Of a stretch of DNA of 64,000 nucleotides, positions 1 through 64,000 are shown in pieces; within the stretch, counting starts at the first letter, position 1, and each line of letters opens with the position of its first letter. The notes under the pieces were generated by a model. That model saw only the letters and a list, made by a program, of their open reading frames with translations, was not told the DNA's origin and ran no database searches. The position numbers and the translations under genes were made by a program. Location of the stretch: the sequence record OR545507.1. One strand, written 5' to 3'.

Positions 1-1
1 C

Positions 2-328
2 TGACTCCGTTGGTACGTAGTCATTACAAAACTCAGTAGGGAAGCCGCTAATGTCGTTTACTTCAGTGTTTTGAATCTTCATACCACGACGCAGACATTC
101 GTTGACAATATCAATATGACGCTTCTGTAAGTACAATAACTTGTCGTAAAAGAATGTCACATGACCTGAACCTAACAGATAAGTACTATTAATTTTGAAA
201 TCACGTACACGCTTACGTGCTTGAACGTGTTTTTGTACAGCACCAAATACACGTGGGAGTTCACGATATTCAGCCATCAGATGTTGGTCAGCAAGTTCTT
301 TAACGTGTACTAAGTTAATGCGTGTCAT
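2..328 (-). CDS. denV: Pyrimidine-dimer DNA glycosylase / endonuclease V (3' end runs off the window)
   Basis: Manual translation [64 protein letters not shown] closely matches T4 DenV; GAGGA RBS upstream. Not in the ORF track. Confidence 0.95.
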
Positions 329-356
329 GTATTCATCCTCTCGTCTTGATGAAATA

Positions 357-393
357 ATTATAGCAAAAAGGGCTGACCGAAGTCAACCCTTTT
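357..393 (-). promoter_or_regulatory. Terminator/promoter cassette copy 1 (GGGTTGAC-TTCG-GTCAGCCC-T5; TTGACT-18-TGnTATAAT)
   Basis: UUCG-capped stem plus U-tract; -35 lies in the 5' arm and an extended -10 follows; sits upstream of denV. Confidence 0.85.
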
Positions 394-395
394 CT

Positions 396-683
396 TTATT
401 CAATGATCCCCAACTTCACAATCTCATACCCGTCCAGATAGCCGTAGGAACACTCAGGTGTTTCATAAGATGAACCATCATGGATGCCCTGGCATTGACT
501 TTTGGAATTCTCAAGCAATCGTTGCAGTACTGATACGTCATCAAGAACGTAATACAAGTTAGCATATAGGTCAGTTACAATACAGTACTCCAACATATCA
601 AATGTATCAATCGAAATTTCAACCTTAGCAAATCGTTTCTTTTCTTTATTATACAGTGCGTACATATTAATCTCCATAATCAA
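396..683 (-). CDS. Hypothetical protein (95 aa)
   Basis: ORF track; co-oriented and tightly packed. Confidence 0.7.
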   Translation of the reverse strand: MIMEINMYALYNKEKKRFAKVEISIDTFDMLEYCIVTDLYANLYYVLDDVSVLQRLLENSKSQCQGIHDGSSYETPECSYGYLDGYEIVKLGIIE

Positions 684-1083
684 GTTTAACTAACTTACCA
701 CCCAGATACCCAAAGTTTTCTGGCTTCGCATCTGAATAGAAGAAGTCAGTACTTAACTCTGAATTCAATGCTAAAGCACACAACTCCACCCAAAATAAAC
801 CCCTATGTTGAACTGGCTTACAACGTTTCTGTACAGTTACTAGTCCAGTACATGATGACCACAACGTAGGACAGATACTACTATCACTACGATTGGAGTA
901 CTGCATCCACGAACGTTCATTGAGGTTAGCTATCATCCCTGTTAAGAATAGCTTCCAACTTTTAAAGGTTGGAATCTTGATAGCATATTCCCCAATGAGG
1001 ATAACAGTTCGTGTTGCACCTTTCAAATCTATATTCATATTTTTAATTAGAAGAACACAAACCAAGTCCAGAACAAATTCCAC
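667..1083 (-). CDS. Minimal protein-kinase-like fold protein
   Basis: GATRTV..(YAIKIP) N-lobe with the invariant Lys, catalytic-loop-like DAKPENFG and DFG-like DYG at the C-terminus. Confidence 0.6.
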   Translation of the reverse strand: MEFVLDLVCVLLIKNMNIDLKGATRTVILIGEYAIKIPTFKSWKLFLTGMIANLNERSWMQYSNRSDSSICPTLWSSCTGLVTVQKRCKPVQHRGLFWVELCALALNSELSTDFFYSDAKPENFGYLGGKLVKLDYGD

Positions 1084-2791
1084 ATTACAAATAAAGACAT
1101 AGTGGTTTTATGTACAATATCAGCAGTACTGGTCCATCCTCCACCGTGTCCTATTCCATTTATGAATAGAACTAAGAACAAGATACCATTTACTACAATA
1201 GTACATACTAAGTACACAAATACATTCCATGCAAGTCCAGGGGATACTAAAGTAAATGGTAAAACTATTAGTAGTATTAGAACTAATAATATTTTCATTT
1301 ATCGCCTCACTTAATTAACGTGACATATCACGTAATATTAGTACGAATCAGATTCCCAGTACTCGATTGCTTCTTTCAGCAATTCTTTAGCACGTTGTTT
1401 TGCAATGCGAGCGGGGAACTGATATGTGTACATTAACTGACGCTTCACTTCATTCAGTGAAAGCTGTTCATGGTACAGTGCATCCATCAGTCGATTACGA
1501 GTACGTAGTTTCATATAAGTTATCCTTATTTCAAAGAATCATAGTAAGCAGTGTCAAAGATTGGAGTCATAATAACATAGTCAATACGGTCAATGTAAGT
1601 TGAACTCCACATTTCTGGTTTGTCATATAACTGACGCTCGCGTTCATTCATACGAGTCAGTACTTCTTCCAATTTACTACGTGAATCCATCAATGTATTA
1701 CTCGAACCATAAGTGAAGTACTCAGTCCAATGATATTCATATTCAGTACTGATAGATTGAATAGTACCATCTTTGAAATGAGCTAAGGCATAACCTTTCT
1801 CTACAAAGTTATCAGGTGGAAGAACACCATCTGGATTAGTTTTCAATGCTTGTGCTAACTTTTCTTTAATTTCATTTAACGTGCATACTGAACGAATGTT
1901 CTTCAGGTTTGATACTTGAAAATCACTGTACTTTCCAAAGAAAAAGACACGCCAATCTTTAGGTTCATTATCAGATACGGTAGCATCAGGGTGATGGGCG
2001 AGTAAACGAAGAAGGCCAGCTTTGTGACCGTTAATGTAGATTTCATGGATGTGGTTAGCAGTTTTCTTAAAAGTAATCATGGTAGTTCCTCGATTGTAGG
2101 GATGAGAAGTTCATCCCCTTGATAAGCATTATACAGTACTGAATGTGTTTGTCAACTCAAAATAAATTCATTTCATGTGCGTATTGTGGTTCAAGATAAG
2201 ATAAGTTTTTGAAACTGTCTTTCAATTCTGCATCATCTACGTACACAGTACCAGGTACATTCCCCATAGTGAAGCCAACCCAAACAGTCATGTTTCCAGT
2301 TCCTAAGCGGGGCATTGATAGCGTCCCGTCAGGTGAAACATCAAACGCTACACTAAAGTCATCCGTTACAACTTCCGAACCATTTTCCAGAATAATACAA
2401 CCACGTTCTTTAAGCTTCTGAATGTGGATAGAAGCCTCTACTGCACGTTTAAAGTTATAGTAAGACTCTTTATCCTCAAACATAGATTGTTTAACCAGAC
2501 GCTTGTTTAGCTCGGTTACTTTGTACATTTGTCGCATTACTTCAACTCCCACAGTTGTAGAATTTCATAAGAGCCTGGTGGTGCTGGATTGATAATCTCA
2601 GGGTATTCAGTACTGTTAGGATTACCACCAGCATTGAACTCAGCAAGTAATAATTCGAGTTCATTCCTATCATGTACAACAAACACGCAATATCCAGTTC
2701 CTTCTTCAAGAACTGTAGTTGACCCCGCACAATCCCATACGGTATCAATACATAATAATTCTTTAGTGTTTTTATTACGCAACGCAAACAT
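1047..2791 (-). CDS. Run of 5 hypothetical ORFs (1047-1298 membrane; 1338-1514, 58 aa, not in track; 1526-2080; 2157-2552; 2537-2791)
   Basis: Co-oriented, abutting ORFs with RBS-like motifs; no recognisable domains. Confidence 0.7.
2128..2155 (-). promoter_or_regulatory. Sigma70-type early promoter TTGACA-16-TATAAT
   Basis: Consensus hexamers, AGTACT in the spacer, followed by a GGGATGA/TCATCCC leader hairpin. Confidence 0.8.
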
Positions 2792-2800
2792 ATTTGTCTC

Positions 2801-3169
2801 CTATCGATTCGGCATATTCTTTCGTAGTCGCAAGAGAAATTCAACCACTGACCATGTTGTAATGAAGGCAATATAAGTTGCAAGGAATCCAGTAAGAATA
2901 AATGCAACCAGCGTACTACCATTTGGGGAATCAGTTTTAATGCCGATGACACCATCGGCTACAGTGAAACATGTAGCCATTAATGTGTAACCTACGTACA
3001 ACACAAAGAAAAACTCATTCTCCATTGAAGGATAGAAACGGTTAAACACTTTATAAAATTTAAAGTACAGTAGGATTATACCAACAAAGGCATAGAATGT
3101 AAACAGTGTTGTTATAATATATGAGATTAGGTTCAAATTATACATATCAACGCTCCGGTAGATTATCAC
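2801..3169 (-). CDS. Membrane protein, tandem paralog 1 of 3
   Basis: About 3 hydrophobic segments; YKVFNRFYPS motif. Confidence 0.75.
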   Translation of the reverse strand: MIIYRSVDMYNLNLISYIITTLFTFYAFVGIILLYFKFYKVFNRFYPSMENEFFFVLYVGYTLMATCFTVADGVIGIKTDSPNGSTLVAFILTGFLATYIAFITTWSVVEFLLRLRKNMPNR

Positions 3170-3494
3170 GTAATGTTTTAATTCGATGATACATTTTCAT
3201 ACCAATATTACCAAAGATACCATATCCAAGTACTAAAATGTATGCGATAAGCATAGTAATAATTACTATAGTACCAAAACTATAATGTACACTACTGATA
3301 CCCATTGTAGTTTCAACGATTATTTGAGAAACTGAAAGAATCAAAAGTACAACTACAATTGGATGATTTGGGTACATTCGGTTGAACAACGTTTTGTACT
3401 TAAAGAAGCACAGTACTCCACCAAATAAGAAGTAAACAATGTAAATGCAAGCAACAGCATAGGCAAACATGTTAGTGTAATAAATCATTACCAA
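3147..3494 (-). CDS. Membrane protein, tandem paralog 2 of 3
   Basis: About 3 hydrophobic segments; YKTLFNRMYPN motif. Confidence 0.75.
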   Translation of the reverse strand: MVMIYYTNMFAYAVACIYIVYFLFGGVLCFFKYKTLFNRMYPNHPIVVVLLILSVSQIIVETTMGISSVHYSFGTIVIITMLIAYILVLGYGIFGNIGMKMYHRIKTLRDNLPER

Positions 3495-3497
3495 TCC

Positions 3498-3836
3498 TTA
3501 CTTTTCAGGGATATTAGAACGCCATATATCAATGCGATGAACTAGTCCAAAGAACAACCATACTGGAACGGCAGCTATCATAACAACAAATGAAAACCCA
3601 GTCAAGACCGATACCAGATTTAATTCATCAGTACTATACCCACATATCAGTACTTCTAATATTCCCCACGTACATGCACAAAACATCAAGAATGAAATTG
3701 GGGCATCATAGTAGATACGTTCATATAAAGTAGTGTATCGGAAGAATGCAATAATGTAGCAAAACATATAATACACCCAAACCAAAGATACTACATAAAA
3801 TGATACTTTGTTTATTAATTCAAAATATTGTTCCAT
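3498..3836 (-). CDS. Membrane protein, tandem paralog 3 of 3
   Basis: About 3 hydrophobic segments; YTTLYERIYYD motif; C-terminus NIPEK resembles NLPER and NMPNR. Confidence 0.75.
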   Translation of the reverse strand: MEQYFELINKVSFYVVSLVWVYYMFCYIIAFFRYTTLYERIYYDAPISFLMFCACTWGILEVLICGYSTDELNLVSVLTGFSFVVMIAAVPVWLFFGLVHRIDIWRSNIPEK

Positions 3837-3838
3837 TT

Positions 3839-4120
3839 TTACCCCAATATATATTCAGAGAGTAATGTATTAGCTTCATCTTTGTTCTTAAGGTAATACA
3901 TGTAATATAGATTCGGTTCACCATCTTTAGCACTCAAATCGAAGTACTTTAAACTATGTACTTTCATAGTAAAAACAAATAATGACTTAAAACCAATCTC
4001 ACCGTACTTAATAAACAGTTCATCCAAATGAATGTAACTTTTTGATTTGGATAATTCTTTAACGTCTGCATCAATTTCAGATAAAAGATGCTTACCTATT
4101 AAGTTTTCAAATGAACGCAT
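3839..4120 (-). CDS. Hypothetical protein (93 aa)
   Basis: ORF track; upstream TTGACA-17-TATTCT promoter at 4157-4185. Confidence 0.7.
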   Translation of the reverse strand: MRSFENLIGKHLLSEIDADVKELSKSKSYIHLDELFIKYGEIGFKSLFVFTMKVHSLKYFDLSAKDGEPNLYYMYYLKNKDEANTLLSEYILG

Positions 4121-4181
4121 GATTTTATCCTTTACCGCAATTTTTATGGTTTATTAAGAATACATCAGAACATCAGTTCTG

Positions 4182-4856
4182 TCAATAAAAAACTGGATCT
4201 TCTTCAGTAATTGGTATTTCTCTACGCACATCACACGAAAGAGGATCAGTAATGAATACATTCCCATCTTTATCCATCATCACATTACTTGAATGAATGT
4301 CTGGTACAAAACGCCCGTGAAACTCTTTCATGATGTTAGCAGCGACCGTTGCAATAGCAATCTCTTCAGAATTTCCACGCATATCATTCACTGAAGTTGC
4401 GTACTGACCAGCATGTGCATACGAATACAAATCTCCAATTTTAGTACTAACAAAGTCATCATAATTATTTTTTTGTTTAATTATAGGATAGTACTTGTCC
4501 ATCTCATACCATCCAAAGTTTCCTTGTTCGTTTGCACTGTAGATCACAGGAAGAAACTTGGTTCCTGCGTTTTCAATGCAGTACTTTGCATAAGCACGAA
4601 AACCATCCCAGCGTGAAGTGGTTACTTTAAATGCACTTCCAGGATAGTTTTTATGTTCAACTACTACAGAGTACATCCCCATTCCAAGCAAAGTAAGTCC
4701 AGCAGCTTTAACTTGTGGAAAGATTACGCGTTCAGCATAAGGAATATCAAACTCCATCGCACAACGAGTTTTTGATGGACGCAAAATGTCAATTAAAGTT
4801 TTGAATATTTCTTGCTTAGTCATTACTTTATCCTCTGTAGTTAATACCAACATCAT
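4182..4856 (-). CDS. Ser/Thr protein kinase, T7 gp0.7-like kinase domain
   Basis: LTLLGMGMYSVV..H..YP..AFKV, D..RAYAKYC, DIHSSNVM and ITDPLS parallel the T7 gp0.7 kinase motifs (LLGNGHFS, VIKV, DMHSGNIM, ITDPVS). Confidence 0.85.
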   Translation of the reverse strand: MMLVLTTEDKVMTKQEIFKTLIDILRPSKTRCAMEFDIPYAERVIFPQVKAAGLTLLGMGMYSVVVEHKNYPGSAFKVTTSRWDGFRAYAKYCIENAGTKFLPVIYSANEQGNFGWYEMDKYYPIIKQKNNYDDFVSTKIGDLYSYAHAGQYATSVNDMRGNSEEIAIATVAANIMKEFHGRFVPDIHSSNVMMDKDGNVFITDPLSCDVRREIPITEEDPVFY

Positions 4857-4888
4857 AACAAAAAAGGCTGACCGAAGTCAACCCTTTT
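4852..4888 (-). promoter_or_regulatory. Terminator/promoter cassette copy 2 (TTGACT-18-TGnTATGAT)
   Basis: Same UUCG hairpin as copy 1. Confidence 0.85.
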
Positions 4889-4892
4889 ATTA

Positions 4893-5312
4893 TCATTTAC
4901 AGTTTTCTATAACTATTGCACGTTTTAGTATTTTACTTTCATAAACATACTTAAGATGACCTTCTTCACGAATACGATTGAACACATATCCTAGTTTATC
5001 TTTTAGTACTGAAGCGGTATCAATGTCAAGATTAACTTCAACCCCTCCTGTTAATTTAACTTTATATGTAAAGCTAAAAGCATCACCAGATTCAACCAAT
5101 GGGACTACTTGTTCATACGTATTCAACATAACTCGTTCATCATTAACTAAATTATATATTACTATATCACAAGTTTTTACCCCAATTTCCTCTAAGGTAG
5201 GAGCATTGTCTACTATAACATCTTTTACTGTATTAGCAACCTGTTTAGCATCTGCTGCATATACATTAAAACTAAAAAGTACTAAAATAATACTTAAAAA
5301 AATCTTTTTCAT
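4893..5312 (-). CDS. Secreted/periplasmic protein
   Basis: Signal-peptide-like MKKIFLSIILVLFSFNVYA-A. Confidence 0.7.
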   Translation of the reverse strand: MKKIFLSIILVLFSFNVYAADAKQVANTVKDVIVDNAPTLEEIGVKTCDIVIYNLVNDERVMLNTYEQVVPLVESGDAFSFTYKVKLTGGVEVNLDIDTASVLKDKLGYVFNRIREEGHLKYVYESKILKRAIVIENCK

Positions 5313-5321
5313 TATATATCC

Positions 5322-5651
5322 TTATTTTATTTTACACGTCATATCGGGTTGTGCTGGTTTATTATTTTTAAACGGATTAGGTTTTTTATCTTTCTTTTTA
5401 TCTTTTAAAGGTTTTTTGTCTTCTTTTTTATCTTTATCTTTGTCTTTTTTATTTTTATCAGGTTCAGAGGGAGTATTACATTGTGCTGGGGGTTGATTAG
5501 TTGGAGTACAGCTATTGTCTGATGGGAGTATTACTTCTTTACAATTGTAAAATAGTAAACTTTTATTTGTGGTTAAATTATGAAAACGATAGTTACGTTC
5601 ATTATTATAATAAATTGTTTTAGTACTTTCAATGTCATTACACATTGCCAC
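5322..5651 (-). CDS. Protein with Pro-rich linker and Lys/Asp low-complexity tail; possibly the C-terminal part of the upstream ORF
   Basis: PDKNKKDKDKDKKEDKKPLKDKKKDKKP tail; in the +1 frame of 5656-5907. Confidence 0.6.
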   Translation of the reverse strand: MAMCNDIESTKTIYYNNERNYRFHNLTTNKSLLFYNCKEVILPSDNSCTPTNQPPAQCNTPSEPDKNKKDKDKDKKEDKKPLKDKKKDKKPNPFKNNKPAQPDMTCKIK

Positions 5652-5655
5652 GGAA

Positions 5656-5907
5656 TCACCGAAACTCTTTTTCTATTCCCATTACATCAGTCTTACGCTC
5701 AGATAGTATACCTGAAGTATATGAATCTTTGTTGTCAAACGCATTAAATCCAATAGTTCTGTCGGTGTCGTGTATTATTCCTTTTGTGTATGAGGTAGTA
5801 TAGAACTCCCCATTTCTGAAATCCTGCCTTGCTACGGAGCAATGATAATCTGCACCATAAGCAGTACTGGAAAATAATACAATTCCAAATATAATATATT
5901 TTTTCAT
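5656..5907 (-). CDS. Secreted protein (likely start 5907, MKKYIIFGIVLFSSTAYG-A)
   Basis: Signal peptide with GAGG RBS; the longer track start at 5982 crosses a terminator. Confidence 0.65.
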   Translation of the reverse strand: MKKYIIFGIVLFSSTAYGADYHCSVARQDFRNGEFYTTSYTKGIIHDTDRTIGFNAFDNKDSYTSGILSERKTDVMGIEKEFR

Positions 5908-5936
5908 TGTAATCCCTCTTCTTAATTCCTCTTTTG

Positions 5937-5971
5937 TATTTACAAAAAAAGGCTGACCGAAGTCAACCTTT
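5937..5971 (-). terminator. Cassette copy 3 (GGTTGAC-TTCG-GTCAGCC-T7, followed by GTAAATA)
   Basis: Same hairpin, just after the stop of the 514-aa gene. Confidence 0.85.
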
Positions 5972-5978
5972 AGTTTTA

Positions 5979-7523
5979 TCATTTACCGTATTTGCTCATG
6001 ATGTCCTTTTCCCAATGAGTTACGTTACCGTTATCGTAATCTTTAAAGGAATTATCAAGAGTAGTTAATGCATATTCGTATGCTTCAGGTGATTCAATGT
6101 CAACATCATCAGCACCATTTACTAAATCAGTCCATGCTTTTTGTAGTTTACGAGCATTTTTACCAACATTACTTTTAATCCAACTAATGTTTTTGTTGAT
6201 ACTCTTATTATCAGCACCAGCTTTTTTACCAATATCGGATATCCACATCATTAGCTTTTGGAGTTCATGAATGGAGTTGTCGTTCATTTCACGATCTTTA
6301 GCCAATTCTGCTTCCATGCCATCAGTATCAGTACCATCTTTAGAACCTACATCAATTCCATGTTTAGCTAATAGTTTACCAAGTTCAAAGAATGCTGCCT
6401 CAGCAGGGAAGTCATAACCTTTGTCTTTGTAGTTGTTCCATGCACTATCAAACTCATCTACAAATCGGTTGGCATAATCTGGATTGTCCACGAGAGCTTT
6501 GTACACTGCCATTGCATGTTCAAATCCTTCTTTGTCAGAACCAAACTCTCCCATTTCTGGACGATGAATGTAACCATCCATATCAACAGTATCAGGTAAA
6601 TCATCATGAGATGTTTCAGCATCTTTCTGGTCAACTGCACCTTCTTCATCTGCACGAACTAAGTAACCATCTTTTGATACTTTCTCACCATGTTCAGCTT
6701 CATACTTTTTCATAGTATTGAATGCAGAATTCATAACAGTGATGAATCGAGACTTCTCACCTGGTGAGTAAGAATCTAATGCTGCTTTAATAGCATCATG
6801 TACTAATTGAATCTTATCATCTTTGCCTTCAAGACGATTTTCTAACTTAGCAAGAACATTCTTAACTTGCTGGGCGTTAGCACGGTCTTCTTTACCTATA
6901 CGGTTAACAGTATGGAGGATGCTTTCAAGACTTGCTTCTTCAGCAGTCGCTTCTTCTTGTCCTTCAAGTGCACGCATGATAGTACTGAATACTTCAGTTG
7001 GTTCAGTACTGGTATTTCCACTCATTGCATCAAGTACAGCTTGTGCTTTGACTTTTAATTCTTCTTTAGGTACAGATTGCAATTCTTTCACAATACCTTG
7101 GATAAGTTGTGGTTTATTAGCAAAAATCTTACCTAACTTATCAGACAATTCTTTGACAGGGTTAACCGCCTTTGGTGCTTCTTGTTTTGGTTCTTCTTTC
7201 GCAGGAGAAGACTTTTCTTTTTCTTCACGTTCCATATCAGCTAGGCGTTGTTTTTGTGTAGCATTAAGAAGTCCCAATGAATTAACATAACGTAGCTTTT
7301 CTAGCTCAGTCATGTTCTCAGTACTCTTAACTTCACCTGCTTCTGCGTTTGCTTTACCAGCTAGACCAGTTCCTTGGTTACGTGATCCACGTGAACCTTG
7401 ACCTGCTTGATAACTATTTGGTCGGCGGTTGCGTTCACTCCATTTATCCGAGTGACCAGCCATGTTACCACCATTTTTATCAGTAAAATTACTTGGCATT
7501 TGATTTCTCTCCATAGATTTCAT
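5979..7523 (-). CDS. Large acidic helical protein, possible late/virion-internal protein
   Basis: 514 aa, D/E-rich; upstream TATAAATA (7540-7547) matches the T4 late promoter consensus; paralogous to 7769-8152. Confidence 0.55.
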   Translation of the reverse strand: MKSMERNQMPSNFTDKNGGNMAGHSDKWSERNRRPNSYQAGQGSRGSRNQGTGLAGKANAEAGEVKSTENMTELEKLRYVNSLGLLNATQKQRLADMEREEKEKSSPAKEEPKQEAPKAVNPVKELSDKLGKIFANKPQLIQGIVKELQSVPKEELKVKAQAVLDAMSGNTSTEPTEVFSTIMRALEGQEEATAEEASLESILHTVNRIGKEDRANAQQVKNVLAKLENRLEGKDDKIQLVHDAIKAALDSYSPGEKSRFITVMNSAFNTMKKYEAEHGEKVSKDGYLVRADEEGAVDQKDAETSHDDLPDTVDMDGYIHRPEMGEFGSDKEGFEHAMAVYKALVDNPDYANRFVDEFDSAWNNYKDKGYDFPAEAAFFELGKLLAKHGIDVGSKDGTDTDGMEAELAKDREMNDNSIHELQKLMMWISDIGKKAGADNKSINKNISWIKSNVGKNARKLQKAWTDLVNGADDVDIESPEAYEYALTTLDNSFKDYDNGNVTHWEKDIMSKYGK

Positions 7524-7539
7524 TTTTTCTCTATGTCTA

Positions 7540-7579
7540 TATTTATAGTATAAAGAAAAGGCTGACCGAAGTCAACCTT
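7540..7579 (-). promoter_or_regulatory. Cassette copy 4 (TTGACT-17-TATACT) overlapping a T4-type late box TATAAATA
   Basis: Read directly from the sequence. Confidence 0.8.
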
Positions 7580-7585
7580 ATTTTG

Positions 7586-7699
7586 TTACTTAGATTGTTC
7601 TTGTGCAGGTGGATTTACTTTTTGATCCACTACATAGAATACACCACCAACCAGTACTGCGGCGATGAGTGCAGCAACTACAAATTTCAAACCTTGCAT
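7586..7699 (-). CDS. 37-aa single-pass membrane micro-protein (not in track)
   Basis: MQGLKFVVAALIAAVLVGGVFYVVDQKVNPPAQEQSK; GAGG RBS; flanked by two cassettes. Confidence 0.7.
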   Translation of the reverse strand: MQGLKFVVAALIAAVLVGGVFYVVDQKVNPPAQEQSK

Positions 7700-7728
7700 A
7701 TATGATACCTCAGTTATATTGAGAAGTT

Positions 7729-7767
7729 ATGATACAACAAAGGGCTGACCTTAGTCAACCCCTTTTT
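7729..7767 (-). promoter_or_regulatory. Cassette copy 5 (loop TAAG; TTGACT-18-TATCAT)
   Basis: GGGGTTGAC-TAAG-GTCAGCCC variant. Confidence 0.8.
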
Positions 7768-7768
7768 A

Positions 7769-8152
7769 TTACTTCTTGAACTTATGTTTTTCACTTTCGA
7801 TTGCATTCACGATTTCATCATGAATTTTACGAAGATTGTGAGTTTTCTTGAGAGAATCATGCAATGCACGGAATGCAGAGTGTACAGTTGCTTTAAAGTG
7901 CTCTTTAGGAGTTACTTTAAGTTTCTCGATAATATCACGTACATAGATTGGGTGATCTTCAAACACACGGTTTAGCTCGTGGCCTAGAGACTCTAGACTA
8001 AACGCTTTTTCACGTGAAGGACGATCATGTGCAAGACTTTGGTCAGGTTTTAGAAGACCTAGTGAATCTAGATATTTGTGCTTATGTGCATTGTCTAGAC
8101 CAGAAATATCAACATCATGGGATGGATCTTTCTTATTCCATTTATCAACCAT
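7769..8152 (-). CDS. Short paralog of the N-terminal part of the 514-aa protein
   Basis: KYLDSLGLL vs RYVNSLGLL; LNRVFEDHPIYVRDIIEKLKVTPKEHFK vs LGKIFANKPQLIQGIVKELQSVPKEELK; TATAAATA at 8189-8196. Confidence 0.75.
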   Translation of the reverse strand: MVDKWNKKDPSHDVDISGLDNAHKHKYLDSLGLLKPDQSLAHDRPSREKAFSLESLGHELNRVFEDHPIYVRDIIEKLKVTPKEHFKATVHSAFRALHDSLKKTHNLRKIHDEIVNAIESEKHKFKK

Positions 8153-8267
8153 TTTTATAACTCCTATAAGAGATAAATTTTACTATAATATTTATAGTTC
8201 CTGTGTCATTTATATGAACTGACATAGAAAATTATATCATATTAAAAATGGTTGTCCCAAAGTTAAA

Positions 8268-8741
8268 TCAGTACTGATCAAGTTCAGATGTAAAAATGAA
8301 TGCATCCATGTCTTCCAACGTAAGTTTTAAGTCTGGTACGTACTTAAGAATAACGCACTCTGGCTTCTTAATAGCAGCTTGATAAGCAGCAATGGCAAGG
8401 GATTCCAACTGCTGTGCTGTATAATTTTTACGTTCTGCATTAAAAACTTTGTTTTTGATATCACCACCTGGGAGTTTTTCAAACTCACGCATAACTGCGG
8501 TAAGAACATCGTCAGCAGTGTTACTATATACCCATTGGGGTAATTGCATTACATTATAAATCACACCACTATCATCCATCAAAGAGATCCATTTATATCC
8601 ATCACTCGCACTAAACAAACGCCCTTTTAGTACTGTGTTATTAGTTAAATTTACAAATGCAAAAATATCTTGTTCGTTAAGTTCAATACTATTAACATTT
8701 ACCCAACTCATTACGATTCCCCATTCATAAATCACGAACAA
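8268..8741 (-). CDS. Hypothetical protein (157 aa)
   Basis: ORF track. Confidence 0.7.
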   Translation of the reverse strand: MFVIYEWGIVMSWVNVNSIELNEQDIFAFVNLTNNTVLKGRLFSASDGYKWISLMDDSGVIYNVMQLPQWVYSNTADDVLTAVMREFEKLPGGDIKNKVFNAERKNYTAQQLESLAIAAYQAAIKKPECVILKYVPDLKLTLEDMDAFIFTSELDQY

Positions 8742-9321
8742 TATTCATTAAACACAATTTAGGTTTTATAGCATTCAACACCCATATGCATTCTTTGTAA
8801 GTAGCTATTATATCATCTAAATGCTCAGTTACAATGCTTTCTTGAAAATATTCTTCATCATTGAGCTTTGCTAATTTAGTAACATCACACGTAGGCACTA
8901 TAGGTCTGGATTGTACACCCATTCCATTATTGATATTAGTGAAATGTACAAAATGGTACTTCACAACACCTTTATCTAGATTTACTATACATGACAAGTT
9001 TTCCAACTCAGTTAGTTCTTTACTACAAGTAACATTAATGAAACCAGTATTATAGGCTCTATAATCATCTACTGATATCTCAAAATCATTACGCTGAAAT
9101 ATAAGTGAAATGAGTTTGTCCAGTGGTTTTACATTCATATATTTTAATGAATTTACGTATGATACTTCAATCTTAGATGAAATTATTTTTTTACTAAGTG
9201 CAGTCAATTCTTTATTAGATTTACCTGTTAATACTATAGGTTTAAACCTAGAACTCTTATTTTTCTTTGATACTTTAAAACGACCTTTACGATTCATATT
9301 TTCCTCAATTAATAATTTCAC
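8725..9321 (-). CDS. EExxFQxS family protein
   Basis: NDEEYFQESIVTE near the C-terminus. Confidence 0.7.
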   Translation of the reverse strand: MKLLIEENMNRKGRFKVSKKNKSSRFKPIVLTGKSNKELTALSKKIISSKIEVSYVNSLKYMNVKPLDKLISLIFQRNDFEISVDDYRAYNTGFINVTCSKELTELENLSCIVNLDKGVVKYHFVHFTNINNGMGVQSRPIVPTCDVTKLAKLNDEEYFQESIVTEHLDDIIATYKECIWVLNAIKPKLCLMNIVRDL

Positions 9322-9526
9322 ATTTAACGTGTGGTTTATATAACATAATTAACCCATTTTTAAGTACAATGATTGTTCCTCGGTCAGTAATAGAAACGTT
9401 TTTAATTATACTTTTTTTATATGTTTCAACATATTTCTCTTCGTAATTTATACATTTAACATATTCTTTTTGTTTAGCACTTACAACAGTACTGAATAAT
9501 ATCAGTACAAGTACTATATATTTCAT
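9305..9526 (-). CDS. Small secreted protein
   Basis: MKYIVLVLILFSTVVSA-K signal-like N-terminus. Confidence 0.6.
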   Translation of the reverse strand: MKYIVLVLILFSTVVSAKQKEYVKCINYEEKYVETYKKSIIKNVSITDRGTIIVLKNGLIMLYKPHVKCEIIN

Positions 9527-9543
9527 TACTATACCTTATAAAC

Positions 9544-9574
9544 AAAAAGGAATTCATTTAAGAATTCCTATTTT
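9544..9574 (-). terminator. Intrinsic terminator
   Basis: AGGAATTC/GAATTCCT stem followed by a T-tract. Confidence 0.7.
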
Positions 9575-9578
9575 ACAA

Positions 9579-10509
9579 TCATTTATCTAACATACCATTG
9601 TGTAAACGTTCATATACTTCAGTTCGACGCAAATTCACAATATCTTCTGCGTATTTTAATGTAAATGCCCATGCTTTTGGATGTACGTTAAGCTTCATAC
9701 GAATTCGATTTTTCATCAACTCTCCACTTAAACGAATAAATTCGTGTACACCACGACTACCGTATTCAGTAATTAAATCATTAATGTACATATCACGAAG
9801 AGTTTCATCTGCACATTCTTTAACCATTTCTACGTCAGCGACGATGCTTTCATTAACTGAAGTACTGATCATTTTAATTTACCTTATTTAAATTCGACTG
9901 TAATTTTATCACCTTCAACTACGAACTTACAGTTGTAGCGACGTGCCATATCCATGTACATATGCTCAGAGTACCAGGGAACATCAATAATCGGATGCTC
10001 TGCGTATTGTAGAACTTCACGGTCGCCAACTGTAGTGATGACGAAAGAAATGTTCATCTCTCGTAAAAACAGTTCAGCACCAGGAGAACGATTAATAAAT
10101 TCAGTATCATTACGTAAAGTAAATCCATTATATTGTAATTTAAGCTTCATATGTTATCCTCTATTCAATACCATTCTTTAAAACCATTAAGTTCGGCTAT
10201 GTGAGTAATTATAACACATATAACATTCAGGTCAAGTATAATTTGATCATAATTTAATTTTATACGATCATCATTATATGCCCTAAAGACTACATCGTAA
10301 TCAAAGAAATTTGCGTTTTCATCATTCATTGAAACGATTCGGTATCTACGTCTTCCATCTGTATTGAATATTGTTAAACACTGTTGAAACTTTCTCATTA
10401 ACTGTTTAGATAGGATATTATAATATTCAATATCTTTTTGTGAATTACGTGGGTCATCAGGAAGATAGAATGAAACAAATTTCTTTAATTCTATTTGAGT
10501 TTTATCCAT
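9579..10509 (-). CDS. Three hypothetical ORFs (9579-9872, 9884-10150, 10165-10509)
   Basis: ORF track; co-oriented. Confidence 0.7.
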
Positions 10510-10970: not shown

Positions 10971-11005
10971 ATTATAACAAAAAAGGCTGACCGAAGTCAA
11001 CCTTT
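10971..11005 (-). promoter_or_regulatory. Cassette copy 6 (TTGACT-18-TGnTATAAT)
   Basis: Same hairpin; contains the TGA stop of 10997-11242. Confidence 0.85.
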
Positions 11006-12372: not shown

Positions 12373-12999
12373 TTACATCTTATTCGTGAACTTGAATTTG
12401 ATAATATCAATCCAAATTTTAACATTTCCTGCAAATAGTGCTTTGATTAGCCACATAATTGCAACAAAGTTCTCAACTAAATCCAAAGTTTTAACTACTG
12501 CACCGAGTGGGAAGATAAAACTCAAAACCCATACAATTACTGAAACCACAACGACTGTATAGAAAATACGCACAATCGGTGAATCAAGCATAAACAACTC
12601 AGAGAACTCTTTTTTATCATTATCATCAGTAATAAAGCATTCGTAAACCAGAAGCCAAATCAGAATTAAAGACGGAATTGAAATTAGTACTGATAGCATA
12701 TTTTTTACCTCAAGTTTAAGTGTTAAGTTTCAGACTACAGGAACCATTATACAGTACTACGAACGTTTGTCAACATTTGTTTCTTCAATAAGCATAAGAT
12801 AACTTAACACGAAGAGTAATACCGAAATAATATCAATAACTGTAAAGCTCACTGGAATGATAATAGACACCAGTACTAATGCCACGTTTAGCAAGAATAC
12901 AGTAGTGAGATCTACCATCGTTCGTCTAGTGGCTAATGCCACTAGTGTAGGATAGAACATAAACAATAGTGCAACAACAAAACTTAGTACTAGATACAT
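12373..12999 (-). CDS. Two small membrane proteins (12373-12699, 12757-12999)
   Basis: Multiple hydrophobic segments; promoter TTGACA-16-TATAAT at 12746-12773. Confidence 0.65.
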
Positions 13000-16305: not shown

Positions 16306-17574
16306 TAACGAACCTCCACTTCTTGAGAAAGAGCATGAGTCAGTGCATTTGAGTTCGAACCATTCATTTCACGCTGACATACAAACATAATGGCATCTTG
16401 TACTGAACCTGCGATTTCATACTCACGACCTTCTGGATCAGTTACCAGATGTTCAACGATACAACCACCTCTCAGTACAGAAGCACCAGTACTTACACTA
16501 ATTCTGTAACCTAAGAAATCAAACTGCATACATGCGTCAGTAGGTTTCATCCAATAACCGCTGTTTTGATTCAAATCGATGATTACAAAACCTTGAGTGT
16601 TAGTTTGAAACATAGTTAATTCCTCATTTAATTTAAAAGGGCGGGAACGCAGTGACGAGTACGATTATGCTGTCTTTCCTTTCACTGCATTCCCTTTGAT
16701 ATAAACATTATACTGCTATTATTCAGTACTGTCAATCGATATAAGTACCTTTTTTAACATCACAGACTTCTTCCATCCAATGTGGATTTTCGTTTTTATC
16801 AGTGAAGATTTGTTCTGCTTCTTCTTTTGTTTCAGCTAGGACAATACGATCCCCTTCATCCAAATCACGGATACGATACACTTTCAGTTCTTGTTTCTTC
16901 TCAAGGATATTACACAGTTCACGTGCTTTTTCTTCATCGCACTTCCCTTCATTAGCATAAAACCAAATTGCTTTTTTAATAAGGTCACGTTCTTCTTTAG
17001 AAAAAGACATAATATTTCCTATCATTTGTTAAAGTGGATTTCGTTTGATATAAACATTATACAGTACTGATATCTTCTGTCAAGTATTAATCACCAAAAA
17101 TCATCATATACCCAAAGCAAGCAACACAGATGACTAAAACTAACAATACCAACGATAGCCTCTAACATCATTTTATATCCTTAATCGATAATTTTATATT
17201 CACGATGACCATAGAAGCCAGCTTCAAGGATGCGATTACCATCAGCATCTTCCAAGTCCCAACCACGGGATGTTTCGGCAATAATAGTCATGATGTGACC
17301 TCTTGGGAAAATTCCACTCAGAGTGGATACATCCTCAAGTAATTGAACTTTCTTTCCAACATTGGAATTCGGTTTAAACATTTTATGGCCCTTATTCATT
17401 GATCACATCAAGTACTTTGTCCAGCTTTTTACCAATACTTTCCTTTGGTTTCTCACCATTCTGGAATACATTAGTACTGCAATACTCAGGACGCGTATTA
17501 GGAAACTTCTCGTTCATCCAGGAGTGACCGTAAACACCCAGCATGATGCCAACGATAAGAATGATAATTTGCAT
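16305..17574 (-). CDS. Small hypothetical ORFs (16305-16613, 16732-17025, 17181-17399, 17392-17574)
   Basis: ORF track; promoters at 16707-16735 and 17056-17083. Confidence 0.7.
16707..16735 (-). promoter_or_regulatory. Early promoter TTGACA-17-TATAAT(GTTTAT)
   Basis: Consensus hexamers; -35 overlaps the upstream TGA stop and an AGTACT. Confidence 0.85.
17056..17083 (-). promoter_or_regulatory. Early promoter TTGACA-16-TATAAT(GTTTAT)
   Basis: Consensus hexamers, AGTACT in the spacer. Confidence 0.8.
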
Positions 17575-19465: not shown

Positions 19466-20431
19466 TTAGAAATCTTCGTATTCGTACCCTTTTGCAAGTA
19501 CTAGCTTCTTAAGCTTTTGCATAGCTTCACTGTACTTTCGATGTATTGATGAACGGGATTTAACATATTTTCCATTATCATCAACAAAACCATTATCAGC
19601 AATCTCACGAAGCGTTTCAGGTTCATATTCACCTAGACCATGAACACGCTGGATAATCTCACGTTCTTTAGTACTCAATTCGTTAGTCAGTTCATTGATA
19701 GCATAACGTAAAGGTGCACGAATACTATCAACATTGAGGTTAAAATCAGAAGCAGGTGAATGAATAATGTCACCTAGTGTACCATCGGTAACACCGTCTA
19801 ATGGTGCATCCAGAGAAGTGTATTCGCTTTGAAATAACAAACAGTTATTAACATGCTGAATCTCAATCCCAGTACCCTCTGAGATTATTTCAGGAGTTGG
19901 GCGAACACCATGTTTACGCATATATTCCTGGCAGAATCTTTTTACTTTGATCTTATGAACACTCATATAACGTGGGAAGTGTACCATATAGTTAGCGTCA
20001 GAACTTTCGTTATAAACTGTCATGTAAATACTAGAAGAAGCATAGGTAATGAACTTCACATTCTTATTAAGATCAAAGGTTTTTAGTGCTCTCATGAACC
20101 CCTCAACACCATATGAAATCTTATCTTCAAATGGGATATAACAAGTACATTTACTTGCTACATCAATAATAAGTCCATAATTGTAACGAACTAACAGTTC
20201 AGTGTTTTTCTTTACATTGATACCAGCTTGAATATCACGAATTAGATCTTCATTGGAAACATTTGGTGGTCGCTTAAGTGTAATATTATATTTGAAACTG
20301 CTTTGTACTTTACCTTCATTTTCATCTTTATCTTCAACGAAATCTAAGGCTTCTAGTGTGTTGACTTCTTCATTAGCAAAACATTCATCCAGAACTTCTT
20401 CGGCAATTGTATTTAAATCAAGCTTTTTCAC
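19466..20431 (-). CDS. Sigma-70 family RNA polymerase sigma factor-like protein
   Basis: Region 2 (LVRYNYGLI...FEDKISYGVEGFMRALKTFD..KNVKFITYA), region 3 (PTPEIISE, YTSLDAPL) and region 4 (LSTKEREIIQRVHGL...ETLREIA). Confidence 0.9.
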   Translation of the reverse strand: MKKLDLNTIAEEVLDECFANEEVNTLEALDFVEDKDENEGKVQSSFKYNITLKRPPNVSNEDLIRDIQAGINVKKNTELLVRYNYGLIIDVASKCTCYIPFEDKISYGVEGFMRALKTFDLNKNVKFITYASSSIYMTVYNESSDANYMVHFPRYMSVHKIKVKRFCQEYMRKHGVRPTPEIISEGTGIEIQHVNNCLLFQSEYTSLDAPLDGVTDGTLGDIIHSPASDFNLNVDSIRAPLRYAINELTNELSTKEREIIQRVHGLGEYEPETLREIADNGFVDDNGKYVKSRSSIHRKYSEAMQKLKKLVLAKGYEYEDF

Positions 20432-30200: not shown

Positions 30201-30425
30201 CTATATAAGAAAAAAGGCCGATTCATCGAATCAGCCTTAAGTATAACACAGTAGAAGTTAAAAAGTCAACTTCTAAATTACAGCATCCAAGAGGAATAAA
30301 AAGATACTGTTAGAGGGTAACGAATATAATGAATTTGAGGGTAATATCATTATACGTAAAAAAGTGATAGCTTCTATACATAAGGAGGAATCAGTACTGA
30401 CTAGAAGCTATCGGGTTAAACGATT

Positions 30426-33372: not shown

Positions 33373-33980
<608 letters not shown>

Positions 33981-34031: not shown

Positions 34032-34056
34032 ATTATATCAGTACTGAACTATTTAG

Positions 34057-34061
<5 letters not shown>
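34032..34061 (-). promoter_or_regulatory. Repeated promoter copy b (TTGACT-17-TATAAT)
   Basis: 23-bp direct repeat. Confidence 0.85.
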
Positions 34062-34470
<409 letters not shown>

Positions 34471-35656: not shown

Positions 35657-35975
<319 letters not shown>

Positions 35976-38498: not shown

Positions 38499-38529
38499 AA
38501 AAAAATACCCAGTACTTGACTGGGTATTT
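38499..38529 (-). terminator. Intrinsic terminator
   Basis: AATACCCAGT/ACTGGGTATT stem plus T-tract. Confidence 0.85.
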
Positions 38530-44699: not shown

Positions 44700-45230
44700 T
44701 TATTCAAGTATAGTAATTTCAATTAAACGAATTTCGATAAACTCGTTTTCAGTTTCCCATGACGTGCCAAATTTCTTTTCAAGTTCAGATTTCACATCAC
44801 TTTTAAATTTTCCCATAGTATTAGGAATAATTTGTTTGGTTAATTTGTCGTAACCACAATAAAACATAGGTTTCTCCCTTCGAGATATTAGCTGAACAAA
44901 ATCTTTTGGATATGCAGGTATGTTATGCATCACTTCATGAATACACTCAGTACTTGAATCTTGTACTTTGTACATTACATTAAGTTTACCTCTGAAATTT
45001 GCGGTCATATCAACAATAGTTCCTTTACCCGATTTAAGTAAAGTTCCATTCTTTGAATGAGAGCAATAAAATACCTCATCACCAATATTAGGATAATACA
45101 AATTAAATTCTAATTCAGATTTTACAGCCAGCCGTTTGAAACTTTCTGTACGTTTTATATAAGTTTGGTATTTGTTTATGTTCAAAAGAATATCTCTCTT
45201 AGTAAATGTGATATAACTGGCATAGTCCAT
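44700..45230 (-). CDS. Hypothetical protein (176 aa)
   Basis: ORF track. Confidence 0.65.
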   Translation of the reverse strand: MDYASYITFTKRDILLNINKYQTYIKRTESFKRLAVKSELEFNLYYPNIGDEVFYCSHSKNGTLLKSGKGTIVDMTANFRGKLNVMYKVQDSSTECIHEVMHNIPAYPKDFVQLISRREKPMFYCGYDKLTKQIIPNTMGKFKSDVKSELEKKFGTSWETENEFIEIRLIEITILE

Positions 45231-46042
45231 CCATTCCCAAGCATTTTGTATGCTTGTGTCTTACTAGACACTTTAAAGAAATCTTCAGGAACACCCTGTA
45301 ATTTACAACATTCTACTACACTTAAGTGTCTATAGTCAATATTTCTTTTGCCATTCTCTAATAGATATTGACGACTGATCACTGGGTCACGAAACACCAA
45401 TTGTCGTCTGGATTTATTAAAGTACTGGTTACAATCACCACCTTTAAAATAGTTAGCATCTATACAGTACGAAGCGGTTCTGTCAGTGTACCAACCATCT
45501 TCAATAATATCTTGAAGTTTAGGTGCATTGGATAATGCAGGTGGTATAAAAAGCTTATCAGTACTGTACCAGTAATATCTCTGCCTGAAGTGAGGCGTAT
45601 AATGCTGGGAGTTTATCAGTACTGGCGTGATTCCTAAAATACTATTAATGTATTCTTTGAAATCTTCCTTCATTTTAACATTTTCAAACAGAAATTTCAA
45701 GTTAGGATTGAGACTTTTGATATGATCAAAAATTTCAACCATTACTAAAAATAACTGCCCACGTATATCATTTAAACCACCCTGTTTACCTGCAACTGAC
45801 CAGGCTTGACATGGGAAACCACCCATTAATAAATCTATTTTATCCCACTCAATATCCCATTCTCTCCACTTAGTTACATCACCCAATTGGATAATATCAG
45901 GAAAGTTAGCTTGAGATTCAGCTATTGCGTACTTGTCAATTTCGGATGAATAATATTTTTCAACTGGGATACCAGCATCTTGCAATGCCATATATCCCAC
46001 ACTCATTCCATTAAAAAGAGAAAGTACTCGGATAGGTTTCAT
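45182..46042 (-). CDS. dcm: DNA (cytosine-5)-methyltransferase
   Basis: Motif I VLSLFNG, EID, GDV, motif IV GGFPCQ, motif VI ENV, RQR, and motif X YKMLGNGW. Confidence 0.95.
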   Translation of the reverse strand: MKPIRVLSLFNGMSVGYMALQDAGIPVEKYYSSEIDKYAIAESQANFPDIIQLGDVTKWREWDIEWDKIDLLMGGFPCQAWSVAGKQGGLNDIRGQLFLVMVEIFDHIKSLNPNLKFLFENVKMKEDFKEYINSILGITPVLINSQHYTPHFRQRYYWYSTDKLFIPPALSNAPKLQDIIEDGWYTDRTASYCIDANYFKGGDCNQYFNKSRRQLVFRDPVISRQYLLENGKRNIDYRHLSVVECCKLQGVPEDFFKVSSKTQAYKMLGNGWTMPVISHLLREIFF

Positions 46043-55715: not shown

Positions 55716-55718
55716 GTA

Positions 55719-58837: not shown

Positions 58838-58933
58838 TATAAAACCTCATAATCAATTAAAATTTACGCTATGGTGATATTGTACATACTTCGACTACAC
58901 ATGTCAACACCTGAAAAGAAAAAAGGACGCACC

Positions 58934-60992: not shown

Positions 60993-61088
60993 ATTTTATA
61001 TTATCCTTAAAAACTAGCACATATAATACTATTTACTACTTTTAAAATACAACAAAAGGGGTTTGAATCAAACCCCAATTTAAAAGTT

Positions 61089-62704: not shown

Positions 62705-62964
62705 TCGGCTGAATTATATAATAAAGCCGTGAAAAGTTCTTCTGTCATTTCCAATTGATTTAATAAAAAATTAAAAGAATTTGCCTTATTTTTAATCCCA
62801 GTACTTTCAGCTTGGGCTGATGCAACTAATAAAACTTTAAACATATCATGTGAAACTTCATATACATATTTGGTATTTTTTCTATCTTCAAACATGAATC
62901 TTCCGTTTTTAGATACTAATGTTACATCCTTGAAACTAAATTTTCCATCATCAGTTATCATCAA
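62692..62964 (-). CDS. Hypothetical protein (90 aa)
   Basis: ORF track. Confidence 0.65.
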   Translation of the reverse strand: MMITDDGKFSFKDVTLVSKNGRFMFEDRKNTKYVYEVSHDMFKVLLVASAQAESTGIKNKANSFNFLLNQLEMTEELFTALLYNSADWIL

Positions 62965-63017
62965 AATCTGTCCAAATAAAAAGCCCAGATATTCATCCGA
63001 GCTTTAATTATATTTTA

Positions 63018-63344
63018 TTAACGACCAAAGGTTAGCATTTTAGTTCGTGGATCTTCATCTGAAACTAAACTAACTGCGGCTGGATAATCAACCAAGTTTA
63101 ATTCAATACCATCAACTTCAATAGTTCTTGACCATCGACCATGATCAATTAAAATCCATTGACCTTCTTTAATATCAGTAATGTCTTCGCCTACAGAATA
63201 AACTTTTGCCCAGCGAGAACGAATACCTCTAATTTTACCGTCATCGTTTGTTAAAACGATACCACCTGCTGTTTTGCGTTCACCATGTTCCAGTTCAGTT
63301 ACCAGTACTTTACCTTTACATGCAGTCATTACTTTATTAGTCAT
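63018..63344 (-). CDS. groES: Co-chaperonin GroES-like
   Basis: KVLV..., mobile loop KTAGGIVL, KVYSVG, IKEG..ILI. Confidence 0.9.
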   Translation of the reverse strand: MTNKVMTACKGKVLVTELEHGERKTAGGIVLTNDDGKIRGIRSRWAKVYSVGEDITDIKEGQWILIDHGRWSRTIEVDGIELNLVDYPAAVSLVSDEDPRTKMLTFGR

Positions 63345-63352
63345 TTAATATA

Positions 63353-63697
63353 TTACTCCTGATCTTTGGTTCTAGCTCGACGTGGTGCTTTCTTCTCTTC
63401 AGAAACCTCAGCTTCTTGTTCTTCGGGCTTAACTTCAAAACTCTCATCATCCCATACTTCATCCGTACCATGTTCAGTACTATGAAGTTGATGTTCAGGG
63501 ATATAATCAGGAATTTGCATTTCTCGTTCTTTTTCTTGAATCAACTCTTCACGAGTTTTAATAATTGTTCCACCTGAACCGATTTTATCACCACGTGCGT
63601 TTAAATTAGCATTACCTAATGCTACCTGATGTTGATTTTGGTACTTGAGCATATCCATGTCAATTGTTGTACCACGATAAGTTGTATGTTTAGACAT
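63353..63697 (-). CDS. Hypothetical protein (114 aa)
   Basis: ORF track; acidic C-terminus. Confidence 0.7.
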   Translation of the reverse strand: MSKHTTYRGTTIDMDMLKYQNQHQVALGNANLNARGDKIGSGGTIIKTREELIQEKEREMQIPDYIPEHQLHSTEHGTDEVWDDESFEVKPEEQEAEVSEEKKAPRRARTKDQE

Positions 63698-63760
63698 ATC
63701 AAAATCCTTTTATTGTATGTGTGATATAAGCCTACAATAAACATTATATCACATGTTTTT

Positions 63761-64000
63761 CTACCATTTCAAAAATTCGTTAACATCAAGTTCATACTTC
63801 AATGAATCTACCATATGTAGTCCAATCAAAAACAAACAGTATGATGCAACAGAGCTTCCACGACCTAGACCCCAAAAGATCTCATTTTCTTCCATATAAT
63901 CAACAAGCCATATCATACATCTTAGTAGCTTTGTCATATTATAATATTCATATAAATCAAGTTCATACTCAACACGTTTTCGTGCTTCATCGGATGTGCA
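63761..64000 (-). CDS. DNA polymerase III alpha (DnaE)-like fragment; 5' end outside the window
   Basis: Manual translation RKRVEYELDLY...LVDYMEENEIFWGLGRGSSVASYCLFLIGLHMVDSLKYEL...FLKW* carries the DnaE G.GRGS motif. Confidence 0.8.
   Translation of the reverse strand, partial: CTSDEARKRVEYELDLYEYYNMTKLLRCMIWLVDYMEENEIFWGLGRGSSVASYCLFLIGLHMVDSLKYELDVNEFLKW

Follow-up and report, generated by a model that had tools for sequence, protein, structure and literature searches.

Dispersed AGTACT palindromes in Rak2-like jumbo phages are maintained at the DNA level and may be recognition sites of a clade-specific DNA-binding protein

Why does a single palindromic hexamer, AGTACT, recur hundreds of times along the DNA of a giant coliphage, and what keeps it there? 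The question is raised by a 64,000-nucleotide stretch of sequence record OR545507.1 (positions 1 to 64,000; here called the window), which is Asteriusvirus jumbo coliphage DNA and matches Escherichia phage vB_EcoM_G17 (G17; MK327931.1, ~46.2-110.4 kb) at 99.95-100% identity. The window contains 168 copies of AGTACT, while dinucleotide-preserving shuffles give 18.5 ± 4.0 and never more than 30, and AGTACT is the top over-represented hexamer of the window, at 9.5-fold its order-1 Markov expectation. The ten positions that an earlier note on this DNA had listed for the first 2 kb are all exact, and the ~15-fold excess that it estimated holds for those 2 kb; over the whole window the excess is 9-10-fold. 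We show below that this excess is a DNA-level property that is actively maintained, and we see an even chance that the sites are dispersed recognition sites for a clade-specific, probably dimeric, putative DNA-binding protein, kept by selection.

The simplest account of the excess would be a passive one, in which codon usage, a preferred dipeptide, base composition or the amplification of repeats generates the sites as a by-product, and it is true that AGT and ACT are common codons and that Ser-Thr is somewhat frequent. However, the excess outlasts both codon-aware nulls applied to the 143 open reading frames (ORFs) called in this analysis, which cover 88.5% of the window: the coding sequences hold 146 sites, against 38.4 ± 5.2 when synonymous codons were shuffled within genes and 20.5 ± 4.2 when codon order was permuted. 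All three reading frames contribute (66, 34 and 46 sites in frames 0, 1 and 2), in line with the different reading frames mentioned in the earlier note, and the word is favoured in each; 66 of 106 Ser-Thr dipeptides are spelled AGT-ACT (15.6 expected), and the corresponding counts are 31 vs 5.4 in frame 1 and 46 vs 11 in frame 2. The window has 2.6 sites per kb of coding DNA and 3.0 per kb of non-coding DNA. Genome-wide, non-coding DNA carries 4.7 sites/kb and coding DNA 2.4, a roughly twofold difference in which part of the "non-coding" DNA may be coding, as genes shorter than 150 nt are missed by the ORF calls. The excess also holds over G+C contents from 0.31 to 0.385, and synonymous positions within the sites are constrained. 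An odds ratio of ~6-10 in every context argues for a per-site force acting on DNA, and since Ser-Thr and Val-Leu dipeptides are themselves over-frequent in the window, this force extends into protein sequence. A passive bias is therefore refuted, its probability being negligible, and the claim of the earlier note that codon bias does not explain the sites is borne out, the excess being confined neither to one frame nor to one dipeptide.

The sites are also conserved well above background. Phage TH47 is 83% identical in nucleotide sequence, and of the 153 sites that could be aligned with it, 112 (73%) are unchanged there, compared with 43% of all hexamers and 44% of hexamers of the same composition. 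Third-codon identity is 0.86 within sites and 0.70 outside (p=2e-9), and non-coding identity is 0.97 within sites and 0.86 outside. Conservation above matched controls, synonymous and non-coding positions included, agrees with the suggestion in the earlier note that an active process maintains the sites. At the same time, individual positions turn over in a balanced way: 108 sites are common to both lineages, 35 occur only in that of G17 and phage ECO103 (OR844650.1) and 40 only in TH47, and the changes that could be polarised on two recent branches comprise 7 gains and 4 losses, which by a rough estimate puts gains at ~2x and losses at about half the neutral rate. Across genera, 52 of the 84 site columns in 12 orthologous genes are private to one genome; each genome has 17-28 sites in these genes, and the 19 sites of the window include only 2-3 in common with each other genus (0.05 by chance). 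Positions thus turn over while density is kept, so that density is held by continuing gain and protection rather than by inherited, fixed sites. By far the commonest route of gain and loss between the window and ECO103 or TH47 is AGAACT<->AGTACT (e.g., at 15022, 15096, 15239, 17473, 32231 and 43204), which on the sense strand reads as GTT<->GTA (Val, synonymous), TCT<->ACT (Ser<->Thr) or TTC<->TAC (Phe<->Tyr).

This property belongs to a clade rather than to one phage. An excess of 7-12-fold occurs in every Rak2-like genus sampled, over the same range of G+C content, including phages 121Q, ECO103 and TH47 (~2.0-2.6 sites/kb near the clamp loader), four relatives from IMG/VR whose clamp loaders are ~75% identical, the Erwinia Eneladusvirus pEa_SNUABM_47 and Cronobacter phage GAP32. 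In whole genomes the counts are 919 vs 101 expected for ECO103 (352 kb) and 945 vs 80 expected for the RaK2-like Klebsiella phage OU509535.1 (348 kb; hereafter the Klebsiella phage). In contrast, no AGTACT was found in the PA5oct-like Pseudomonas jumbo phage 30-2 (7.6 expected), the nearest outgroup sampled, with a clamp loader 33% identical, or at 80-130 kb of the Justusliebigvirus coliphage OZ035799.1 (12.9 expected). As other phages avoid AGTACT, its excess is a derived trait of the Rak2-like clade, and the zero counts in the Justusliebigvirus and in phage 30-2 suggest ScaI-type restriction pressure in their hosts. The behaviour of AGTACT is the reverse of the ordinary avoidance of restriction sites by phages and differs from that of other palindromes in the same genome: many GC-rich 6-bp palindromes, namely, GGATCC, CTGCAG, CCATGG, GCATGC, CAGCTG and TGGCCA, are absent from the window (5-7 expected each), and GATC and CATG occur at about half of expectation. 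No mention of the motif was found in published genome papers on Rak2-like phages.

The form of the site points to a protein that reads it, probably as a dimer. The flanks are mirrored, with C at -1 in 83 of 168 sites (49%) and G at +1 in 72 (43%), and G is the rarest base at -1 (7 sites). The extended form CAGTACTG makes up 38 of the 168 sites, close to the ~36 expected from independent halves, so the half-sites are independent of each other. The hexamer sits at the centre of a graded 10-bp palindrome, T-C-AGTACT-G-A (TCAGTACTGA), and a dyad-symmetric site with independent, mirrored half-site preferences is what an operator of a dimeric protein looks like. A motif acting at the RNA level was considered and rejected, as half-variants show no sense-strand preference outside the ACT-free block described below. 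We found no regular long-range or quasi-periodic spacing (coefficient of variation, 0.85 in the window and 1.24 genome-wide), and the sole spacing signal is a spike at 20 bp (and 10 bp) that comes from promoters and a tandem array. In a profile around gene starts and stops, the only features are fewer sites at the start codon and immediately ahead of the stop codon and more sites immediately behind it.

Placement at promoters is the most operator-like feature of the sites. The earlier note had placed AGTACT in promoter spacers, in terminators and in a tRNA stem, and we found it in promoter spacers, in a terminator stem and in a tRNA-Gly gene (Table 1). Six promoters in the window carry the site beside the -10 box, and in ECO103 it lies directly upstream of the -10 box in 15 of the 36 consensus promoters (TTGACW-N15-19-TATAAT). 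Pairs of sites exactly 20 bp apart are in excess as well, with 23 vs 3.4 expected in the Klebsiella phage and 9 vs 3.1 in ECO103. Those of the Klebsiella phage correspond to ~18 promoters of the form AAAAAGTACTTGAC-N10-CAGTACTGTATAAT, in which one site lies over the upstream edge of the -35 box and the other abuts the -10 box, two helical turns apart, plus a tandem array, (AGTACTGAAT)x5-6, with a period of 10 bp (30182-30240), which looks like an iteron or centromere-like binding array. This array stands at the edge of a zone, at 30-50 kb, of higher G+C content and ~8 AGTACT/kb, equivalent to the densest zone of ECO103 (~301-323 kb), where 149 sites in 22 kb amount to 6-7 AGTACT/kb. As 146 of these 149 sites have distinct contexts, amplification of a repeat was rejected as their source. 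The ECO103 zone maps into the direct terminal repeat (the region was matched in G17, fEgEco12 and vB_Ec-M-J), which has been verified by experiment in fEgEco12 and is annotated in vB_Ec-M-J. The terminal repeat holds small early genes, has a G+C content of ~0.36-0.39 vs 0.31-0.34 elsewhere and carries AGTACT at 2.5-3x the genome mean; just upstream of the dense zone of ECO103, AGTACT is missing and GTAC is scarce over the 5 kb at 296.1-301.1 kb. Taken together, the dyad symmetry, the phasing by helical turns, the placement like that of operators and the iteron-like array are typical of DNA sites bound by a dimeric protein.

Table 1. Features of the window that carry AGTACT sites or bear on their interpretation.
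Feature	Position	Strand	Remarks
Dispersed AGTACT sites	1..64000	.	n=168, ~1 per 380 bp; 146 within ORFs (all three frames), 22 outside ORF calls
Sigma-70-type early promoter, TTGACA-N10-CAGTACTG-TATAAT	2128..2155	-	AGTACT at 2135-2140, abutting the -10 box
Early promoter, TTGACA-N10-CAGTACTG-TATAAT architecture	12746..12773	-	AGTACT at 12753-12758
Promoter-like site	16725		Near the promoter at 17056..17083; AGTACT overlaps the TTGACA box
Early promoter, TTGACA-N10-CAGTACTG-TATAAT architecture	17056..17083	-	AGTACT at 17063-17068
Phage sigma-70-family factor	19466..20431	-	Regions 2, 3 and 4; context for early-promoter architecture
Promoter with two AGTACT 20 bp apart	33572..33605	-	33600-33605 over the -35 upstream edge (AGTACTTGACT); 33580-33585 abuts the -10 box
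Promoter TTGACTAAATAGTTCAGTACTGATATAAT	34032..34060	-	AGTACT at 34040-34045
Promoter TTGACTAAATAGTTCAGTACTGTATAAT	34442..34469	-	AGTACT at 34449-34454
tRNA-Gly(tcc) gene	35881..35953	-	AGTACT at 35921-35926
Intrinsic terminator	38506..38526	-	AGTACT inside the stem (38511-38516)
C5-cytosine DNA methyltransferase	45182..46042	-	PF00145, Dnmt3-like, short recognition region; considered as cause and rejected

The nature of the force can be probed where AGTACT is forbidden. The sole long AGTACT-free stretch of ECO103 (285452-293663; ~334.8-342.5 kb of G17) is an ~8-kb block, outside the window, of ~20 small minus-strand genes of unknown function, which within the loci examined spans 1575-9222 in G17 and 1529-9633 in TH47. 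On the coding strand of this block the triplet ACT is missing from all frames and from intergenic DNA (0 vs 146 expected), and Thr is encoded by ACA, ACC and ACG (76, 18 and 15 codons) and never by ACT. The resulting AGT-free run of 8,213 bp in ECO103, of which ~1e-65 would be expected, is unique in that genome, and the exclusion is kept in TH47 but for one AGT, the identity of the block across genomes being 77-90%. A strict one-sided block was not found in a second genus (the Klebsiella phage), which has a mild skew only, and we know of no precedent for such a block in a phage. Because AGTACT has ACT on both strands, it is forbidden here. The word TGTACT, in turn, occurs in 40-45 copies on the plus strand, its complement never, in G17, ECO103 and TH47 alike, and AGTACA, the nearest allowed word and a variant in an outer position, is found 45 times against 3.7 expected, a 12-fold excess, while allowed variants that break the inner GTAC show no enrichment. 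Partial matches are thus rewarded, with outer mismatches least penalised, which resembles binding affinity under selection; a mismatch-correcting enzyme would not enrich AGTACA, and this is our main reason for preferring selection for binding over a conversion drive. As for the block itself, its mRNAs might be immune to an ACU-specific RNase, or its strand to a triplet-specific nickase or primase.

A conversion drive deserves attention because of the cyanobacterial highly iterated palindrome HIP1. In such a process, a methyltransferase would mark AGTACT or GTAC, methyl-directed or very-short-patch-like repair on recombination heteroduplexes would convert near-matches, and the excess would be a by-product of biased conversion rather than of site function. 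Abundance, conservation and turnover match those of HIP1 (Elhai 2015, PMC4390886); the top density lies in the terminal repeat, which must recombine every cycle; a candidate for the marking enzyme, an N6-adenine methyltransferase of the Dam family, is present in every genus; and ScaI-type host enzymes must be tolerated, given that other coliphages avoid AGTACT. Another candidate is the C5 methyltransferase of the window (286 aa), whose closest solved relatives are Dnmt3 catalytic domains. In RaK2, methylated CpG was detected by bisulfite sequencing (PMC3622015), and as its C5 enzyme is a CpG methylase and AGTACT contains no CpG, we reject the C5 enzyme as the cause. Its orthologues are in most genera, and the Eneladusvirus group and the Salmonella 7t3/Munch type alone are missing from the list; in pEa_SNUABM_47, with its 10-fold excess of AGTACT, the region taken as syntenic yielded no homologue, and the Justusliebigvirus coliphage has a 51%-identical homologue, yet 0 AGTACT in 50 kb. 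Nor is there a signature of very-short-patch repair, as the deamination neighbours are not notably depleted (observed/expected, 0.85 for AGTATT and 1.37 for AATACT). The Dam-family enzyme is small (PF05869) and, although found in all genera, is one core gene among hundreds. A conversion drive would also leave unexplained the 12-fold excess of AGTACA, with no inner-variant enrichment beside it, as well as the fixed promoter positions, the 20-bp pairs and the 10-bp array, and we consider it unlikely. The methylation-directed mechanisms listed first in the earlier note are not supported, and among the options that it offered, the site of a DNA-organising protein fits best with the promoter-fixed sites, the pairs and the array.

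Alternatively, the sites could be substrates of a phage enzyme, such as a nicking or cutting endonuclease, the type II topoisomerase of the phage, for which cleavage as A|GTAC|T would leave a symmetric stagger of 4 bases, or an initiator of priming or recombination, with dense sites being needed to replicate, untangle or package a 350-kb genome. The symmetry of the palindrome, its genome-wide density (~1 site/380 bp) and its clade-wide conservation would suit such an enzyme; genes for topoisomerase II subunits and a T4-type replisome are present in the phage, and in the ACT-free block GTACT is kept on one strand only, as if action on one strand were tolerated. Still, a nuclease candidate was not found, operator-like promoter positions and a tandem array suit binding better than catalysis, and no other jumbo phage examined needs such sites, so this reading appears slightly less probable again than a conversion drive. 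It is very improbable that the sites recruit or titrate a host protein, for example, the nucleoid-occlusion factor SlmA, another regulator or RNA polymerase. The SlmA site GTGAGTACTCAC does have an identical core (PMC3020112), and AGTACT sites lie inside sigma-70 promoters, but the flanks are the opposite of those of the 12-bp SlmA site, which has G at -1, C at +1 and outer GT/AC. In the phages, G at -1 is found in few sites of the window, GAGTACTC in 1 of 168 sites there and in 4 of 919 in ECO103, and the full SlmA site in none; SlmA-binding sites were rejected on these grounds. Moreover, the trait is common to phages of Klebsiella, Erwinia, Cronobacter and Yersinia and absent from other coliphages.

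In sum, a per-site force of similar strength (odds ~6-10-fold) favours AGTACT wherever protein code or function permits, in all frames, in intergenic DNA and along the entire 350-kb genome. Existing sites are shielded from substitution while new ones arise, and the genome is at a steady state of ~2.6 sites/kb. Under the reading that we favour, a putative protein common to the Rak2-like jumbo phages would bind double-stranded DNA sequence-specifically, probably as a dimer, and the force would be selection for binding rather than repair bias, weak over most of the genome and stronger at early promoters. The reader would presumably be encoded by the phage and serve to mark, organise or regulate its DNA; switching of early promoters together with coating or structuring of the genome is one such possibility.

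Several observations weigh against this reading. The protein has no candidate: Pfam revealed no DNA-binding domain in the neighbours of the sigma factor, the larger ORFs of the window yielded only a weak HNH match below the Pfam threshold, and the CRJP21 orthologue (window 2157-2537, minus strand) provides no binder either, since its label "restriction enzyme" looks unfounded (no Pfam or PDB match, a PHROG of unknown function and an unusable single-sequence AlphaFold model with a predicted local distance difference test score of 35). More than 90% of the sites are intragenic with no obvious regulatory role, and apart from the promoter and array signal their spacing is near-random, as the coefficient of variation in the window indicates. 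Selection and biased gene conversion predict the same pattern of conservation, gain and loss, and only the AGTACA result and the anatomy of promoters and array separate the two, whereas the peak in the recombinogenic terminal repeat would suit conversion too. Finally, ~930 sites have to withstand ScaI-type restriction by the host, which leaves room for an undetected modification. Virion DNA of fEgEco12 was cut normally by ten enzymes, ScaI not being one of them, so there is no global hypermodification.

Comparison with known systems places AGTACT between several of them. Like HIP1 (GCGATCGC), it is a short palindrome many-fold over-represented in non-coding DNA and in all frames of coding DNA, conserved above background throughout a lineage with positional turnover, and HIP1, too, has long been of unknown function. 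AGTACT differs from it in residing in a virus genome, in being a hexamer with a graded 10-bp context, in its fixed promoter positions, in lacking quasi-periodicity beyond the 20-bp promoter pairs and in having no evident cognate methyltransferase, whereas HIP1 has GATC and CGATCG methylases. The pattern resembles HIP1, therefore, while the mechanism is probably different. SlmA-binding sites, MatP matS sites and SeqA GATC clusters share with AGTACT the palindromic dimer site, helical-phase pairs, arrays, promoter overlap and many copies by which a DNA domain is defined; in contrast, the ~930 AGTACT copies lie mostly in genes, their protein is only putative and their flanks exclude SlmA. DNA uptake sequences (DUS), uptake signal sequences (USS) and Chi likewise reach hundreds to thousands of copies, enter coding DNA through biased codon choice and stand in a steady state of gain and loss, but they are asymmetric, orientation-biased and serve uptake or RecBCD, whereas AGTACT is symmetric, and we know of no uptake step in a lytic phage. 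The CCWGG excess linked to Vsr and Dcm in Escherichia coli illustrates how a palindrome can become more frequent when repair is biased through a methyltransferase; the increase there is well under 2-fold, with the T:G neighbour depleted, whereas the AGTACT excess is 9-12-fold and its neighbours are not depleted.

A further comparison is with T4-type early promoters and mobile promoter/stem-loop cassettes (PeSL), with strong sigma-70 promoters that have extra conserved positions and are repeated before many small early genes, although here the extra element is the very palindrome that is dispersed over the entire genome. As in such cassettes, the window repeatedly has terminator hairpins that are nearly identical (GGTTGACTTCGGTCAGCC followed by a T-run), at 370-389, 4866-4886, 5950-5969, 7559-7578, 7742-7761 and 10984-11003; they are placed after many small early genes, and none of them contains AGTACT. 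Small minus-strand genes fill nearly the whole window, together with a tRNA cluster, the sigma-70-family factor, the C5 methyltransferase and the clamp loader. A virion structural protein of 514 aa (phrog_20398; 5979-7523, minus strand) is set amid a run of small early-type genes, and the sole structural difference from the G17 record is one fewer copy of a tandem repeat of ~153 bp at 50039-50200.

Beyond AGTACT, a second word of these genomes stands out. GCGC is absent from the window (~28 expected), from ECO103 (180 expected), from the Klebsiella phage (131 expected) and from every Rak2-like locus or genome sampled, and its counts are normal in the PA5oct-like outgroup. Such an exclusion goes far beyond the usual avoidance of restriction sites and is odd in a phage that methylates CpG; a phage nuclease could use GCGC for telling host DNA from its own. 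A bolder reading, which we hold to be rather unlikely, is that the ~930 AGTACT sites, with a phage protein devoted to reading them, the exclusion of GCGC and the Asteriusvirus ACT-free block form three layers of one sequence code for "self". In that case the AGTACT reader may mark, organise and time the expression of the 350-kb genome, and Rak2-like phages, which have neither a nucleus nor hypermodified bases, may tell self from non-self by word usage instead of base modification.

Phages normally purge short palindromes, and yet with one hexamer an entire clade of giant phages has gone the other way. The sites predict the architecture of early promoters, and as sites of ScaI, RsaI and TatI they bear on DNA modification. 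With a 350-kb genome, defined promoters and an E. coli K-12 host (Sharanji), these phages offer a tractable, virus-sized analogue of the unsolved HIP1 problem, and a protein that reads the sites, should there be one, would represent a novel type of organiser or regulator acting on phage DNA genome-wide.

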